Shown: positions 23,167 through 27,156 of the stretch, one piece after another
How the letters are laid out: the number at the start of each line of letters is the position of its first letter
How positions within the stretch are numbered: the first letter of the stretch is position 1
Virus record (IMG/VR): IMGVR_UViG_3300028840_001395
Location: 62,001-126,000 of that record
DNA: 64,000 nt
Strand: one strand, 5' to 3'
Translations under genes and position numbers: made by a program
The notes under the pieces: model-generated
Databases searched by the model: none
What the model was told of the DNA's origin: nothing
What the model saw: only the letters and a program-made list of their open reading frames with translations

Positions 23167-23217
23167 GGGCCTGAGAGTGGGCCGCGACCTTTGACAAGTG
23201 AATAGGATTTCCCGTGC
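23167..23217 (+). promoter_or_regulatory. Hairpin + boxA-like element + 5' strand of long-range stem
   Basis: GGGCCTGAGAGTGGGCC then CTTTGACAAGTGAATAG; near-identical copy heads array 2. Confidence 0.65.
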
Positions 23218-23245
23218 TGACGGAATGCCACTGCCGTCAGCACAT

Positions 23246-23332
23246 GCTGGGATGGCGGAATTGGTAGACGCGCCGGTTCGAGAGGCCGGTGGACTTAGTG
23301 CCGTGGGGGTTCGACTCCCCCTCCCAGCACCA
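23246..23332 (+). tRNA. tRNA-Leu(GAG), C at position 33
   Basis: Cloverleaf, long variable arm, loop TCGAGAG, CCA. Confidence 0.75.
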
Positions 23333-23334
23333 AT

Positions 23335-23427
23335 GGAGAGGCAAGCCGATGGGTGACGGCAGCCGCTTGGAAAGCGGTCGAGGTCTGTTGAAGGCCCTTG
23401 AGGGTTCGACTCCCTCTCTCTCCGCCA
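23335..23427 (+). tRNA. tRNA-Ser(GGA)
   Basis: Loop TTGGAAA, CCA. Confidence 0.9.
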
Positions 23428-23439
23428 AAGAAACGCAGT

Positions 23440-23528
23440 GCTGGGGTGGCGGAATGGTAGACGCGCCAGGCTCAGAACCTGGTGGGACGCAAGTGCCCGT
23501 GGGAGTTCGACTCTCCCCCTCAGCACCA
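23440..23528 (+). tRNA. tRNA-Leu(CAG)
   Basis: Loop CTCAGAA, CCA. Confidence 0.9.
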
Positions 23529-23530
23529 AC

Positions 23531-23620
23531 GGAAGGTCAAGCAGATTGGCGACTGCAGCGGCTTGCTAAGCCGTCGAGGTGTAAAAGCCCTTGGGGGTTC
23601 GACTCCCCCACCTTCCGCCA
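23531..23620 (+). tRNA. tRNA-Ser(GCT)
   Basis: Loop TTGCTAA, CCA. Confidence 0.9.
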
Positions 23621-23630
23621 ACTTCGCTAC

Positions 23631-23706
23631 AGGGGGCGCTCTGGGTAAGCGGGCTGGTCTCCAAAACCGGCTGATCTGGGGAGTTCGATTCTCCCGCCCC
23701 CTGCCA
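23631..23706 (+). tRNA. tRNA-Trp(CCA)
   Basis: Loop CTCCAAA, CCA. Confidence 0.85.
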
Positions 23707-23723
23707 GATGATGCAAAGCGCGT

Positions 23724-23809
23724 GCGGTGGTGGTGGAATGGTAGACACGCCAGCTTGAGGGGCTGGTCCTGGAAACAGGGTGGAGGTTCGACTCCTCTTC
23801 ACCGCACCA
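23724..23809 (+). tRNA. tRNA-Leu(GAG)
   Basis: Loop TTGAGGG, CCA. Confidence 0.9.
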
Positions 23810-23817
23810 ATCTTCGT

Positions 23818-23892
23818 GCTGGGGTAGCTCATTGGTAGAGCACCTGAGTGAAGCCCAGGGTGTAGGTGGTTCGATTCCACTCCCCAGCACCA
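23818..23892 (+). tRNA. tRNA-Phe(GAA), atypical anticodon arm
   Basis: Loop GTGAAGC, CCA. Confidence 0.75.
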
Positions 23893-23903
23893 CAAACTTC
23901 GTT

Positions 23904-23980
23904 GGTTGGGTAGCTCAGCCCGGTAGAGCAGCGGACTGAAAATCCGCGTGTCGGCGGTTCAAATCCGCCCCTGACCACCA
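23904..23980 (+). tRNA. tRNA-Phe(GAA)
   Basis: Loop CTGAAAA, CCA. Confidence 0.92.
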
Positions 23981-23989
23981 AGACCCGTT

Positions 23990-24076
23990 CGGAGAGTTGA
24001 GCAGTGTGGTGAGCTTAGCGGGCTGTAACCCCGTGGCCGATTGGCTTTGGAGGTTCGATTCCTCTCTCTCCGACCA
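23990..24076 (+). tRNA. tRNA-Tyr(GTA)
   Basis: Loop CTGTAAC, CCA. Confidence 0.85.
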
Positions 24077-24085
24077 AGAACGCAT

Positions 24086-24173
24086 GGCGCGGGAAGCGTG
24101 TGGCTGGGACCGCCGGTTGACTGTAAATCAACTGCCTGATGGCTGAGGGGTTCGATTCCTCACCGCGCCACCA
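24086..24173 (+). tRNA. tRNA-Tyr(GTA)
   Basis: Loop CTGTAAA, CCA. Confidence 0.85.
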
Positions 24174-24195
24174 ACTTCGGGGGTATCATGCCCTC

Positions 24196-25032: not shown

Positions 25033-25044
25033 ACTTCGATCAAT

Positions 25045-25119
25045 GCCAACGTGGCTCAAAGGTAGAGCAGTCGCCTCGTAAGCGACAGGTTGTCGGTTCA
25101 AGTCCGACCGTTGGCTCCA
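25045..25119 (+). tRNA. tRNA-Thr(CGT)
   Basis: Loop CTCGTAA, CCA. Confidence 0.92.
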
Positions 25120-25126
25120 GATTCGT

Positions 25127-25202
25127 GCCAGTGTAGCTCAGTTGGTAGAGCGCCTCCCTTGTAAGGAGGATGTCGCGGGTTCGATCCCTGTCACTGGCTC
25201 CA
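25127..25202 (+). tRNA. tRNA-Thr(TGT)
   Basis: Loop CTTGTAA, CCA. Confidence 0.92.
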
Positions 25203-25316
25203 CGGTATAATCCCCAGGCCCCCTCGGTGAGTGGGAATGGGCAAGGCGGCGGTCAAGGTCCCCCACCGGCCTTGGCGTGAAGTGTCGCGGCTCACCTTGG
25301 GGGCTTCATCAACAAC

Positions 25317-25391
25317 GCCAACGTGGCCAAGTGGTAAGGCACCGCCTTGGTAAGGCGGCGATCCCCGGTTCAAGTCCGGGCGTTGGCTCCA
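25317..25391 (+). tRNA. tRNA-Thr(GGT)
   Basis: Loop TTGGTAA, CCA. Confidence 0.92.
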
Positions 25392-25400
25392 AAGTTGTGA

Positions 25401-25555
25401 GGGGGAGTGGCGAAATTGGTAAACGCGCTGACTCAAACTGGCGTTTCCACCCTACCCTCCCGGCGAGGAGGAACTGCGAAGCGGCTTCAGAGTATCTGGG
25501 CTTGAAACCCAGTGCCTTTCGAGGCTTGTAGGTTCGATTCCTACCTCCCCCTCCA
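25401..25555 (+). tRNA. Interrupted tRNA (anticodon TGA) with a 68-nt insert in the anticodon stem
   Basis: Removing 25431-25498 gives an 87-nt type II cloverleaf. Confidence 0.65.
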
Positions 25556-25558
25556 TTC

Positions 25559-25633
25559 GGCCCCTTCTTCTAGTGGTTAGGATACCAGACTCTCAATCTG
25601 GCGACACGGGTTCAACTCCCGTAGGGGTCACCA
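25559..25633 (+). tRNA. tRNA-Glu(CTC)
   Basis: Loop CTCTCAA, CCA. Confidence 0.9.
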
Positions 25634-25643
25634 CAGTTCTCAT

Positions 25644-25719
25644 GGCCCGGTGGTCTAGTGGGCAGGACGCTGGACTCTCAATCCAGAGGTCGCGGGTTCA
25701 AACCCCGTCCGGGTCACCA
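25644..25719 (+). tRNA. tRNA-Glu(CTC)
   Basis: Loop CTCTCAA, CCA. Confidence 0.9.
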
Positions 25720-25934
25720 TCTATTCCCTTGCCGCCCCCTGTTTCCGTCGTCAGATGGATGCGGGCGCGGTAGGTTTCCCGCCTGGGCATTCCAACCGTC
25801 CGGGGTCAAGGGTCCGGAGGCCCTGATGGGGGTGACCTCATCGGGAGGCCCGAGAGAAGGTATCCGGTATGGGAACCAGCAGGGGGCGGCTTACCTCTTC
25901 GCCCGTGAGAGTAGTATAGGTGTGGAGGTGTCCC

Positions 25935-26801
25935 GTGATCACCGCGATTCGCATCAGCAACCCCGAGACCGCCTGTGTCCCCTGGTGGTCAGAGGTGGAG
26001 CAACTCAAGGGCCTCAAGAGCATCAAGTTCGACCCTGGACTCAATGTCCTGGTTGGCCCCAATGGCTCGGGCAAGAGCACCATCCTGATGGCCCTGGCCC
26101 GGATGCTTCACTGCGCCCAAGGGGATGTCCAAGTTGTCACGCAGACCTCCGTGATTGACATCTGTGGGCCTGGTCTTGGCTCGAAGATCATGAAGGGCGT
26201 GATGCCCGTCCATGATGGCCTCCCGGTGATGCACTTCGACCCGTCCAAGACGGTCGGTCTCTTCGGCGGCTCTTTCGACTGGGACTTCGGGATGGAGGGC
26301 ATCCAGAACACGATGGCCAAAGGGTCAGCGGGGCAGACCACCCTCATCAGATTCGACCGAGTGGGAGCGGTACTCCTGGGTCACAAGGAACCAGAGGGTG
26401 TCGAGTGGAAGCACACCCCCTACAAGGACACGACCAAGAATCAGATCGAGAAGATCCTCGCGGGCAAGCCGATCAAGGGGAAGAAAAGCCGACCGACCCT
26501 CCTGCTGGATGAACCGACTCGCAGCCTCGACATGAGGTACCAGATGGGGGTCTGGGTCAACATCGCAAGAGCGGCCCAGAAGCGTCTCCAGATCATCGTG
26601 GCGGCGCACTCTCCCCTGGCGCTCCTCATCCCAGGGGCGAACATCATCGAGATGGAGAAGGGCTACGCGGAAGCGGTCAAGCTCAACCTGGACGCGCTCA
26701 TCAACACGGAGCGGATGATCGAACTCATCAACCAGGAACCGCAGAAGCCCAAGAAGAAGGCTGTCAAGAAGCCCAAGAAGAAGGCTGCCAAGAAGAAGTG
26801 A
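25935..26801 (+). CDS. ABC/AAA-type ATPase
   Basis: GPNGSGKST, GSAGQ, LLLDEP, AHS; phage promoter motif upstream. Confidence 0.85.
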   Translation: MITAIRISNPETACVPWWSEVEQLKGLKSIKFDPGLNVLVGPNGSGKSTILMALARMLHCAQGDVQVVTQTSVIDICGPGLGSKIMKGVMPVHDGLPVMHFDPSKTVGLFGGSFDWDFGMEGIQNTMAKGSAGQTTLIRFDRVGAVLLGHKEPEGVEWKHTPYKDTTKNQIEKILAGKPIKGKKSRPTLLLDEPTRSLDMRYQMGVWVNIARAAQKRLQIIVAAHSPLALLIPGANIIEMEKGYAEAVKLNLDALINTERMIELINQEPQKPKKKAVKKPKKKAAKKK

Positions 26802-26857
26802 GTTCTCCGGGTTCGGGGCCAGGGCCGGAAGGCAGCAACCTCGAACCCAACTTCAAT

Positions 26858-26934
26858 ACCCTCGTAGCTCAGGGGATAGAGCACTGGCCTCCGAAGCCAG
26901 GTTAGCACAGGTTCAATTCCTGTCGAGGGTACCA
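26858..26934 (+). tRNA. tRNA-Arg(CCG)
   Basis: Loop CTCCGAA, CCA. Confidence 0.88.
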
Positions 26935-26935
26935 C

Positions 26936-27024
26936 GGAGGGGCAAGCAGATTGGCGACTGCACCCGCCTCGAAAGCGGACGAGCTGTGAAAGGCCTTGGG
27001 GGTTCGACTCCCCCTCCCTCCGCC
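26936..27024 (+). tRNA. tRNA-Ser(CGA)
   Basis: Loop CTCGAAA, CCA. Confidence 0.9.
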
Positions 27025-27038
27025 AAAAAGAAAACCAC

Positions 27039-27124
27039 GGAGGCGATCTGGCTGGATGAAGGCCTCGCCTTGAAAGCGAGTGGTCCGAAAGGGCTTGGGG
27101 GTTCGAGTCCCTCCGCCTCCGCCA
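27039..27124 (+). tRNA. tRNA-Ser(TGA)
   Basis: Loop CTTGAAA, CCA. Confidence 0.85.
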
Positions 27125-27133
27125 ACGACTCGT

Positions 27134-27156
27134 GCGCGGGAAATCCTGTTCACTTG
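27134..27156 (+). repeat. 3' strand of the long-range stem closing array 1
   Basis: Reverse complement of 23195-23217 with two G.U pairs. Confidence 0.85.

Follow-up and report, generated by a model that had tools for sequence, protein, structure and literature searches.

The two tRNA gene arrays in the window (the whole 64,000-nt stretch of DNA that was analysed, from an uncultured 436-kb phage) are each bracketed by a long pair of complementary sequences. With a probability of about 0.6, we read these pairs as rRNA-style leader–trailer helices of the array transcripts, probably acting as double-stranded-RNA processing sites, around arrays that appear to be gated by attenuators. At much the same odds, each array would be a stable-RNA operon with the layout of an rRNA operon. 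The parts follow one order in both arrays: a sigma70-type promoter, a leader ORF with terminator and antiterminator, an element here called A, the 5′ strand of the helix, the tRNAs with a few ORFs, the 3′ strand at 9–10 nt past the last tRNA, and the promoter of the next gene. Huge phages carry dozens of tRNA genes, and the locus suggests two testable mechanisms for how such arrays may be transcribed, regulated and processed.

Complementary strands around the two tRNA arrays

The features at array 1 are as follows.

23166–23194, plus strand: element A, copy 1, with a small hairpin (23168–23183) and a boxA-like run
23195–23217, plus strand: 5′ (leader) strand of helix 1, arm L, CAAGTGAATAGGATTTCCCGTGC
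23213–23242, plus strand: local 10-bp hairpin between arm L and the first tRNA
23246–27123, plus strand: tRNA array 1, 22 tRNAs (Leu, Ser, Trp, Phe, Tyr, Thr, Glu, Arg) and two ORFs
24139–24666: ORF within array 1, zinc-ribbon-like protein
25920–26801: ORF within array 1, AAA_21-type ATPase
27134–27156, plus strand: 3′ (trailer) strand of helix 1, arm R, GCGCGGGAAATCCTGTTCACTTG
27149–27177, plus strand: promoter-like site of the next gene after array 1, TTCACT-17-TATAGT with TG

An initial annotation had described a 23-nt complementarity around array 1, and this is borne out: the two arms form 21 Watson–Crick pairs and two G.U pairs on the plus strand, giving 23 bp over 3.9 kb. A degenerate 23-mer of helix 1 matched only arms L and R in the window, on opposite strands, and matched in 0 of 100 shuffled sequences, with none expected by chance. 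The two pairs that deviate, 23203/27148 and 23215/27136, read U.G on the plus strand, the strand that also carries the tRNAs, as the annotation had said. Its placement of the trailer arm was likewise correct, arm R starting 10 nt past the last tRNA (27123 to 27134), and at the other end 28 nt separate arm L from the first tRNA (23246). The local hairpin shares 5 nt with the 3′ end of arm L. In the relative L015 it carries one wobble change and one compensatory change (C-G to U-A), the latter indicating that this region is under selection for structure.

Array 2 lies on the minus strand and has a bracket of its own.

61166–61573, minus strand: inserted ORF of endonuclease VII type, lying between terminator 2 and element A
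61123–61152, minus strand: element A, copy 2, its last 10 nt already within helix 2
61103–61132, minus strand: 5′ (leader) strand of helix 2
46117–60868, minus strand: tRNA array 2, 44 tRNA genes with ORFs interspersed
46077–46107, minus strand: 3′ (trailer) strand of helix 2

Positions 61122–61103 and 46107–46088 form 20 perfect pairs, a complementarity far beyond chance, and after a bulged C at 46087 there follow 10 further pairs, two of them G.U, so that helix 2 comprises 20+10 bp across 15 kb. Its trailer strand lies 9–10 nt past the last tRNA, as for helix 1.

Arm L makes up the 3′ part of a 51-nt element whose first 40 nt recur with 90% identity at 61113–61152 on the minus strand, upstream of array 2, and both 5′ arms directly adjoin the shared element A. 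The extension of helix 2 by 10 nt into element A argues that this element is transcribed; alternatively, element A itself could be an unrecognised promoter. A boxA-like run, GACCTTTGACAAG, at 23186–23198 overlaps the 5′ arm of helix 1. Compared with the gamma-proteobacterial boxA consensus (GYTCTTTAANA), which may not be the boxA of the host, GACCTTTGACA and GGTCTCTGACA agree at 8/11 positions, a weak resemblance. No exact boxA match was found in the phage genome, and the motif class is not enriched there (6 found against about 5 expected, 1 of the 6 inside a coding region). A search of the leaders for boxC (UCUGUGUGGG) revealed none.

Divergence of the proposed helices and DNA-level alternatives

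Among 20 aligned pairs of helices 1 and 2, 11 are identical, seven are changed on both sides, two on one side, and none is broken. The two helices have a 10-nt core in common, and 7/10 of the remaining pairs differ on both sides. The inner halves are specific to each array: GATTTCCCG and CAACGCGATT are unrelated sequences, each matched by its own partner. Real two-sided changes are known only between the two paralogous arrays, and any inverted-repeat pair would show them. All internal or edge mismatches for which both strands are known (4/4) are G.U on the transcribed strand. The earlier argument that the G.U pairs favour pairing at the RNA level remains a modest one.

The relative L015 contains a whole homologue of array 1, in which the 51 nt of element A and arm are identical and the trailer is conserved after a different last tRNA. 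The helix 1 trailer is kept in L013/14 and L015–20, at 8–10 nt past whichever tRNA is last, and 5′ arm 2 is identical in L031/L032. In L021 another sequence takes the place of the arm beside the ORF, and what is left of the trailer is a diverged sequence resembling it, 45 nt past the last tRNA. The position of the trailer relative to the last tRNA is conserved in relatives. The wider proposal of the initial annotation, an RNA-level stem like that of pre-rRNA, gained much support from a second bracket with the same architecture and a different inner sequence; the ends of the helix, on the other hand, are not kept, the 23 bp becoming 19 bp, a bulge and 1 bp in L015.

Leader strands are invariant in the relatives, and trailer strands change mostly by transitions that preserve wobble pairing. 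In L039–41, L046 and L034–36 most trailer changes are C-to-U where the partner base is G, or A-to-G where it is U, and these trailers are still able to pair with the leader of the window, at computed energies of −49.9, −44.4 and −34.1 kcal/mol, respectively. The preference of the annotation for RNA-level pairing over a DNA repeat gains support from these mostly wobble-compatible differences between arms, and features expected of DNA-level explanations are absent.

One such explanation, which we regard as improbable although it fares best among the alternatives, takes the arms as regulator-binding DNA sites or promoter parts, the left site serving the array promoter and the right one the −35 element or operator of the next gene; the complementarity would then be a by-product, equally improbable, of one site used in opposite orientations. 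It could draw on the TTCACT hexamer that falls within arm R, 17 nt before a TG-extended TATAGT, on the start of arm L within TTGACA, and on leader-side sites that are invariant between lineages with a neighbouring protein only 66% identical, as a protein-recognised sequence would be. However, neither TTGACA at site 1 nor CTGACA at site 2 is followed by a −10 hexamer, 32 nt separate the 3′ arm from the next −10-like element at array 2, which is not a −35 distance, and the spacing from arm to TATAGT ranges from 15 to 18 across relatives. Nor would a common protein site account for unrelated inner halves that are each still paired with their own partner. The trailer sites drift (5/20 positions changed in L034), whereas the leader sites do not, and L046 retains the trailer behind two inserted ORFs.

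Slightly less probable still is a role of the arms as DNA recombination sites, with the arrays as invertible or mobile cassettes, as in Mu G, P1 C and Salmonella Hin, or as segments with transposon-like terminal inverted repeats. As in those systems, where the known segments measure 1–4 kb, short inverted repeats (here of 20–30 bp) flank a segment, of 3.9 kb and 15 kb. The 10-nt core occurs in all four sites, pointing inward, homing-endonuclease genes adjoin two of the sites, and a gene 1.2 kb upstream encodes a topoisomerase IB-like protein that has a weak hit to Phage_integrase. Against this, no match to the Resolvase (PF00239) or Phage_integrase (PF00589) families was found in the 436-kb genome, and no invertase gene was seen. 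The sites lack internal dyad symmetry and dyad-symmetric half-sites, there is no target-site duplication (flanks ...TTTGA and ACCCC...), and the ORFs of array 1 encode the zinc-ribbon-like protein and the AAA_21-type ATPase. The gene for endonuclease VII was inserted late and is missing from relatives. Contigs of three metagenome runs, a type of assembly that drops rare variants, span both arms with 0 differences, in the orientation of the reference; the orientation is the same in L015 and L013, and no second one was seen. Two asymmetries also set the arrays apart from invertible segments: the mismatches are of the wobble type on the transcribed strand, and element A is found beyond the repeat, at the promoter end of each array only, which a symmetric DNA site leaves without explanation.

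Very improbable is the notion that the arms are functionless relics of the duplications or rearrangements that built both arrays from one ancestral unit: the promoter, leader start, element A and core are paralogous between the arrays, so that a duplication did happen, but duplication gives direct and not inverted copies at the far array ends, a neutral 20–23-nt relic would not remain complementary, and both arms of both arrays are kept although the flanking proteins have diverged to 59–89% identity and the neighbouring intergenic sequence has changed.

Promoters, leader ORFs and putative attenuators

Upstream of element A, each array has the following parts.

22941–22968, plus strand: promoter P1 of the array-1 unit, sigma70-type, TTGACA-16-TATCCT
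22997–23098, plus strand: leader ORF 1, 33 codons, AGGGA 10 nt before ATG
23124–23163, plus strand: attenuator terminator 1, 14-bp G+C-rich hairpin with a T-rich tail
61844–61871, minus strand: promoter P2 of the array-2 unit, sigma70-type, TTGACA-16-TATCAT
61640–61792, minus strand: leader ORF 2, 50 codons, GGAG 10 nt before ATG
61577–61612, minus strand: attenuator terminator 2, hairpin plus T9

P1 and P2 are paralogous, and the regions transcribed from them also begin similarly. The counterpart of P2 in L032 reads TTGACA-16-TATCCT, with conserved hexamers and a diverged spacer. Leader ORF 2 is called as a gene on 12 contigs, and the 10-nt Shine–Dalgarno spacing of the leader ORFs is kept in L015 and L032.

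The leader ORFs sample the tRNAs of their own arrays. Array 1 has 17 distinct anticodons, 15 of which read codons in leader ORF 1, and array 2 has 28, of which 26 read codons in leader ORF 2; in 20,000 control windows the null means were 6.1 and 15.4 and the maxima 13 and 23 (arrays 1 and 2). Swapping leader ORFs and arrays gave 6/28 and 7/17, and the codon partition was significant by Fisher's test (p=2e-6). In the relatives the coverage is retained: leader ORF 1 of L015 has the same length and 15/17 anticodons, and leader ORF 2 of L032, with 51 codons, has 26/28. Among the papers searched, there was no report of a leader ORF that samples about one codon per tRNA species of an array.

By folding, the 5′ half of terminator 1 can pair alternatively with the 3′ end of leader ORF 1 (23075–23092), and that of terminator 2 (61610–61601) with 61651–61642, a stretch overlapping the stop codon; the structure of terminator 2 is kept in L031/L032 with one-sided changes. 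In silico, a ribosome at the stop codon gave the terminator, and a ribosome stalled upstream gave 2:3 pairing. The switch appeared in the full-length fold of leader 2 and, for leader 1, when the nascent RNA was folded. Judged from its predicted parts, the promoter, short ORF and terminator/antiterminator before each array is a classical attenuator, and control of the phage's tRNA genes by tRNA supply, on when tRNAs are short, is suggested.

Proposed mechanism and relation to known systems

Since the antiterminator strand lies at the end of the leader ORF, a ribosome that quickly reaches the stop codon would mask it and the terminator would form, while a ribosome stalled at any sampled codon would leave it free and the array would be transcribed. 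Array expression may in this way follow a shortage of the tRNAs that the same array encodes. Because a terminator stands between each promoter and the 5′ arm, the arm would be present in RNA only upon read-through. Read-through transcripts would carry both strands, as suggested by where the promoters and attenuators are placed and by the extension of helix 2 into element A. The strands could pair into a leader–trailer helix at least about two turns long, and this helix would act in processing or insulation as a double-stranded-RNA site, with host RNase III as the most likely nuclease; no RNase III is encoded in the phage genome, so that the host enzyme would be needed. Cleavage would free the array from the leader mRNA and the downstream mRNA, and the end tRNAs would then be finished by RNase P and 3′ trimming. 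As a lead only, an rrn-like antitermination complex may be loaded at element A and retain the leader strand up to the point where the trailer emerges. Against such helices, RNase P would have severed the leader from the array well ahead of trailer synthesis, above all over 15 kb, and a −35-like hexamer overlaps with the 3′ arm at array 1.

A more specific version, to which we give slightly less than an even chance, has the arrays as on-demand tRNA genes, in which the codon-sampler ORF would turn the array on in a shortage of any one tRNA and off on supply, and the read-through RNA would be handled like pre-rRNA, through an rrn-like leader element and a leader–trailer helix that closes as much as 15 kb. 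The stall would be triggered by a host tRNA pool that is exhausted, degraded or attacked.

In bacteria, pre-16S and pre-23S rRNA are closed by stems that RNase III processes, and boxB, boxA and boxC lie in the leader. Leader–trailer helices of rRNA have 25–40 bp, and their leader strand (boxC) is almost invariant while the partner exchanges Watson–Crick and wobble pairs (PMC10250234). The arrays resemble them in that complementary tracts bracket stable RNA on one, here predicted, transcript, in a predicted helix of 20–40 bp, with a nearly invariant leader strand just downstream of a conserved element, a partner whose changes mostly preserve wobble pairing with the known leader, and an adjacent, weakly boxA-like run. 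They differ in that the phage helix brackets 22 or 44 tRNAs and ORFs instead of one rRNA, in one case over 15 kb, in that the phage units carry a leader-ORF attenuator, which rRNA operons do not, and in a boxA match of just 8/11 and no boxC in the leaders. With trpL, hisL, pheL, thrL and leuL the units share a promoter, a short ORF with Shine–Dalgarno sequence, mutually exclusive antiterminator and terminator hairpins and a T-run. Unlike these amino-acid attenuators, the phage ones would regulate tRNAs and not biosynthetic enzymes or synthetases, and their ORFs contain about one codon per array tRNA species rather than a run of a single codon.

Polycistronic phage RNA is cut by host nucleases at the RNase III sites of phage T7 early mRNA and in processing of the T4 tRNA cluster. 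The arrays would be similar, a putative polycistronic phage RNA being cut into units by double-strand-specific or tRNA-processing nucleases, whereas the T7 and T4 sites are local hairpins between genes and not a pairing of multi-kilobase array ends.

If the proposed reading is true, these would be the first tRNA genes under ribosome-mediated attenuation that senses their own products, and theirs the first leader–trailer helix around a tRNA array. The helix would extend to tRNA arrays, and over 15 kb, a principle thought to be specific to rRNA, and this span bears on how far-apart RNA ends meet during transcription. The sampler ORFs, if true, represent a new attenuation logic with one sensor for many tRNA species and the products as signal, and would link the host tRNA pool, as altered by codon mismatch, shut-off or anticodon-nuclease defences, to phage tRNA expression. 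Both designs are small enough for cloning and are possible parts for engineered tRNA operons.

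Complementary arms at both tRNA arrays

The virus record (435,804 bp, direct terminal repeats, 62% G+C) holds every credible tRNA gene of its genome within the window, bases 62001-126000, and at least nine samples have yielded assemblies of the same phage at 0.2-1 Mb; the source sites are hypersaline or estuarine sediment. No relatives were found among GenBank phages by DNA or by protein, and an Rfam search returned the tRNAs and the tmRNA only, the leaders being without any match. The initial annotation had claimed that two 23-nt tracts bracketing the first array, 23195-23217 and 27134-27156, are complementary in the manner of pre-rRNA; both tracts are present and form 21 Watson-Crick and two U.G pairs on the plus strand. 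The degenerate 23-mer occurs in two places only, on opposite strands, and never appeared in shuffles. The left arm of array 1 belongs to a longer element, of which it forms the 3′ portion; 40 nt of this element (23166-23205) are repeated on the minus strand shortly before array 2, at 61113-61152 and with 90% identity. Array 2 also has its own bracket, in which the leader tract 61122-61103 pairs with 46107-46088, beginning 9 nt downstream of the last tRNA, as a perfect 20-bp helix that continues beyond a single bulged C for 10 further pairs, two of which are G.U on the transcribed (minus) strand. In all there are four sites, each pointing into an array, where A is the conserved leader element directly upstream of each 5′ arm:

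23166-23217, plus strand: site S1, A-core-B
27134-27156, read on the minus strand: site S3, core-B
61103-61152, minus strand: site S2, A-core-C
46077-46107, read on the plus strand: site S4, core-C
23246-27123, plus strand: tRNA array 1, 22 tRNAs
28688-29048: tmRNA gene
46117-60868, minus strand: tRNA array 2, 44 tRNA genes

All four sites share the core AAGTGAAYAG, and the inner 10-13 nt are array-specific. When the helices of arrays 1 and 2 (helix 1 and helix 2) are compared over 20 aligned pairs, 11 are identical, 7 are changed on both sides, 2 on one side (U.G versus U-A), and none is broken. Whole-leader RNAduplex energies, compared with those for random windows of the genome (-65 versus a null of -54 ± 7), are not discriminating in this G+C-rich genome and were replaced by contiguous-helix counts, by which the array-2 leader forms no comparable helix elsewhere in the 18 kb that follow it. 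At the level of sequence, the complementary arms are confirmed, and the observation extends to both arrays and to relatives.

Several features of the arrays and their surroundings were also recorded. At 25401-25552 (plus strand) Rfam aligns a tRNA (39.9 bits) interrupted by roughly 80 inserted nt, and ARAGORN places tRNA-Ser(tga) there, at 25467-25555; this tRNA may be intron-containing or composite. Run X4, an estuary metagenome, contains a relative about 90% identical, of which one contig runs directly from 25891 to 26799; the stretch 25892-26798 is missing, so that the relative has no array-1 ATPase ORF at that place. RtcB is encoded between the arrays (39242-40504, plus strand), PTH2, a NUDIX/NrtR-like gene and a CTP_transf_like gene lie upstream of leader 2, and distant homologues of the ORF at 27239-28192 adjoin RtcB, RNA ligase or sigma70 genes on other phage contigs (L023, L027, L042); together these form a tRNA/RNA-repair neighbourhood. 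A 1003-aa protein whose catalytic core is that of a eukaryotic-type topoisomerase IB (E 2.7e-17), and which also matches Phage_integrase weakly, is encoded at 19025-22036 (minus strand), 1.2 kb upstream of the array-1 leader, and an HNH endonuclease gene (45464-46012, minus strand) directly follows the array-2 3′ arm. The repeated motif (A)GAGTAGTCTGGGTGAGG, present in both orientations, clustered near 36 kb and located at 35951-36202, 49546-49584 and 22919-22930, may be a phage-specific promoter or operator.

Conservation of the arms among relatives

Short metagenome contigs on which a homologous array ends also encode homologues, 80%, 66% and 59% identical, of the protein that directly follows array 1 (27239-28192). 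The two closer lineages (80% and 66%) keep the trailer arm 8-10 nt after the last tRNA, although that tRNA differs, and the distance from the trailer to the TATAGT of the next gene is 15 to 18 nt in the relatives. On L015, a contig with a whole array-1 homologue, 51 nt of element A and arm are identical to the window and the sequence on both sides has changed; its helix comprises 19 bp, a bulged U and 1 bp, with the same internal U.G as in the window and with inner-end pairs lost without compensation.

The array-2 leader occurs on two JGI contigs (L031 and L032) with a 5′ arm identical to the window, and array-2 trailers of other relatives were examined on contigs retrieved via the downstream NUDIX gene. 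Contigs L034-36 come from runs SRR20820733/39/40, and L039-41, L013 and L046 from SRR28369931, SRR28370466, SRR28093593 and SRR29278615. Trailers of L039-41 and L046 show an A-to-G change opposite a leader U and the loss of one U, by which the bulge becomes an A.C mismatch; those of L034-36 contain six substitutions, four being C-to-U opposite G or A-to-G opposite U. Scored against the window leader, the trailers of L039-41, L046 and L034-36 give duplexes of -49.9, -44.4 and -34.1 kcal/mol. In L046 the trailer is retained with two ORFs inserted between it and the last tRNA, and one of these extra ORFs (L046:1150-2400) is faintly Asn_synthase-like. In enterobacterial pre-16S leader-trailer helices the boxC strand is almost invariant and its partner drifts by wobble-compatible changes (PMC10250234); likewise, the phage leader strand is invariant and the trailer strand drifts, against the known leader, by mostly wobble-compatible changes.

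Pattern scans of IMG/VR with the arm, element A and the predicted L034-type arm (a 5′ arm complementary to the L034 trailer would contain CTTTAACAAGCAAAGAA) gave chance matches without tRNAs or nothing. No loci related via the neighbouring 317-aa protein were found in viral contigs, its distant homologues (P0007, P0009, P0016) do not adjoin tRNA arrays, and the upstream 100-aa protein has no homologues on record. The context of contig L045 is unrelated. DNA contigs aligned to the arms contained no informative variants, and the diverged relative in X4 has no coverage there.

The notion that the arms are operator or promoter sites on DNA is weakened, since TTGACA and CTGACA in the leaders are without a following -10, the array-2 3′ arm lies 32 nt from the next -10-like element, and the array-specific halves are unrelated in sequence, yet each is matched by its own partner. 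The left arm as a sigma70 promoter was ruled out, as no -10 lies downstream at either copy. DNA inversion, or a mobile cassette bounded by inverted repeats, fits the bare geometry of the sites and little beyond it: no serine or tyrosine recombinase is encoded in the 436-kb genome, the sites are without dyad symmetry or target duplications, a single orientation is seen in three assemblies and two relatives, element A is one-sided relative to transcription, and the mismatches are strand-asymmetric. A neutral relic is excluded by the conservation of the arms.

Candidate attenuators and element A

A sigma70-type promoter (TTGACA-16-TATCCT) lies about 230 nt upstream of S1, and a paralogous one (TTGACA-16-TATCAT) lies upstream of S2; on L032 both hexamers are kept and the spacer has diverged. 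Each is the start of a similar unit:

22941-23163, plus strand: array-1 promoter, leader ORF and terminator/antiterminator
61871-61577, minus strand: array-2 promoter, leader ORF and terminator/antiterminator

The leader ORFs have 33 and 50 codons, and a GGAG-like motif precedes each ATG by 10 nt; about 25 nt past each stop codon a G+C-rich hairpin with a T-run is found, directly followed by element A in array 1 and in L031/L032. In the window, an endonuclease VII-type ORF (61166-61573, minus strand) separates the array-2 terminator from element A; L031/L032 are without it, their T-run abutting element A as in array 1, and the ORF probably entered the leader as a homing-endonuclease insertion. 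Pairing is possible between the 3′ end of each leader ORF and the 5′ half of its terminator; in folding, the terminator forms when a ribosome footprint is placed at the stop codon, and the antiterminator when the footprint lies further upstream. Promoter, short ORF and terminator/antiterminator make up a classical attenuator anatomy, a candidate sensor of tRNA supply.

Of the 17 distinct anticodons in array 1, 15 read codons that occur in leader ORF 1, among them every Thr (three) and Ser (four) anticodon and the sole Trp, Tyr and Phe species, and leader ORF 2 covers 26/28 of array 2. Same-length in-frame windows from the long ORFs of the genome (20,000 draws) gave 6.1 ± 2.0 (maximum 13) and 15.4 ± 2.2 (maximum 23) anticodons, respectively. 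Swapped leader/array comparisons gave 6/28 and 7/17, and the codons are partitioned between the arrays (Fisher p=2e-6). The property is kept in L015 (15/17) and in L032 (26/28), which gains exactly CAA and ATA, the two codons missing from the window's leader. A literature search returned no description of such anticodon-sampling leaders, which is not proof of absence.

Element A contains a run with 8/11 matches to the boxA consensus GYTCTTTAANA (PMC5725501), which is gamma-proteobacterial and may not be that of the host; this sequence likeness is only a lead. As a recurrent motif the run was rejected, because the motif class is not significantly enriched in the genome and one other copy lies inside a coding region. 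Upstream of the tmRNA (28659-28688, plus strand), a boxA-like run, GGTTCTCTGAAAACA (9/11 to GYTCTTTAANA), ends 2 nt before the tmRNA 5′ end, and the gene is preceded by a -10-like TAGTAT within AGTAGTATAGG; this copy is suggestive at most.

A proposed leader-trailer helix on the array transcripts

Given the attenuator anatomy, element A and the 5′ arm should fall in the read-through transcript. This stretch can be argued to be RNA because helix 2 runs 10 nt into element A and because, in the hairpin that separates arm 1 from the first tRNA, a C-G pair has become U-A in L015, a compensatory change. At array 2 a 235-nt hairpin-rich spacer between the 5′ arm and the first tRNA (60869-61102, minus strand) is kept, apart from indels, in L031/L032 and matches nothing in Rfam.

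The arms are best explained by an rRNA-style leader-trailer helix on the transcript of each tRNA array, within an operon gated by a codon-sampling attenuator; that the arms act as a helix in RNA is given a probability of about 0.6. An RNase III step is purely conjectural, and the phage encodes no RNase III gene. RNase P would sever the leader early, before the trailer is made minutes later, so that pairing with the late trailer would require either that a leader fragment be retained, which has been proposed for boxA-anchored rRNA leaders (PMC10250234), or that the first tRNA be processed slowly at its 5′ end. The conserved hairpin adjoining arm 1 might be involved. Leader-trailer helices and leader-peptide attenuation are both of known kinds, and what would be new here is their application to phage tRNA arrays.
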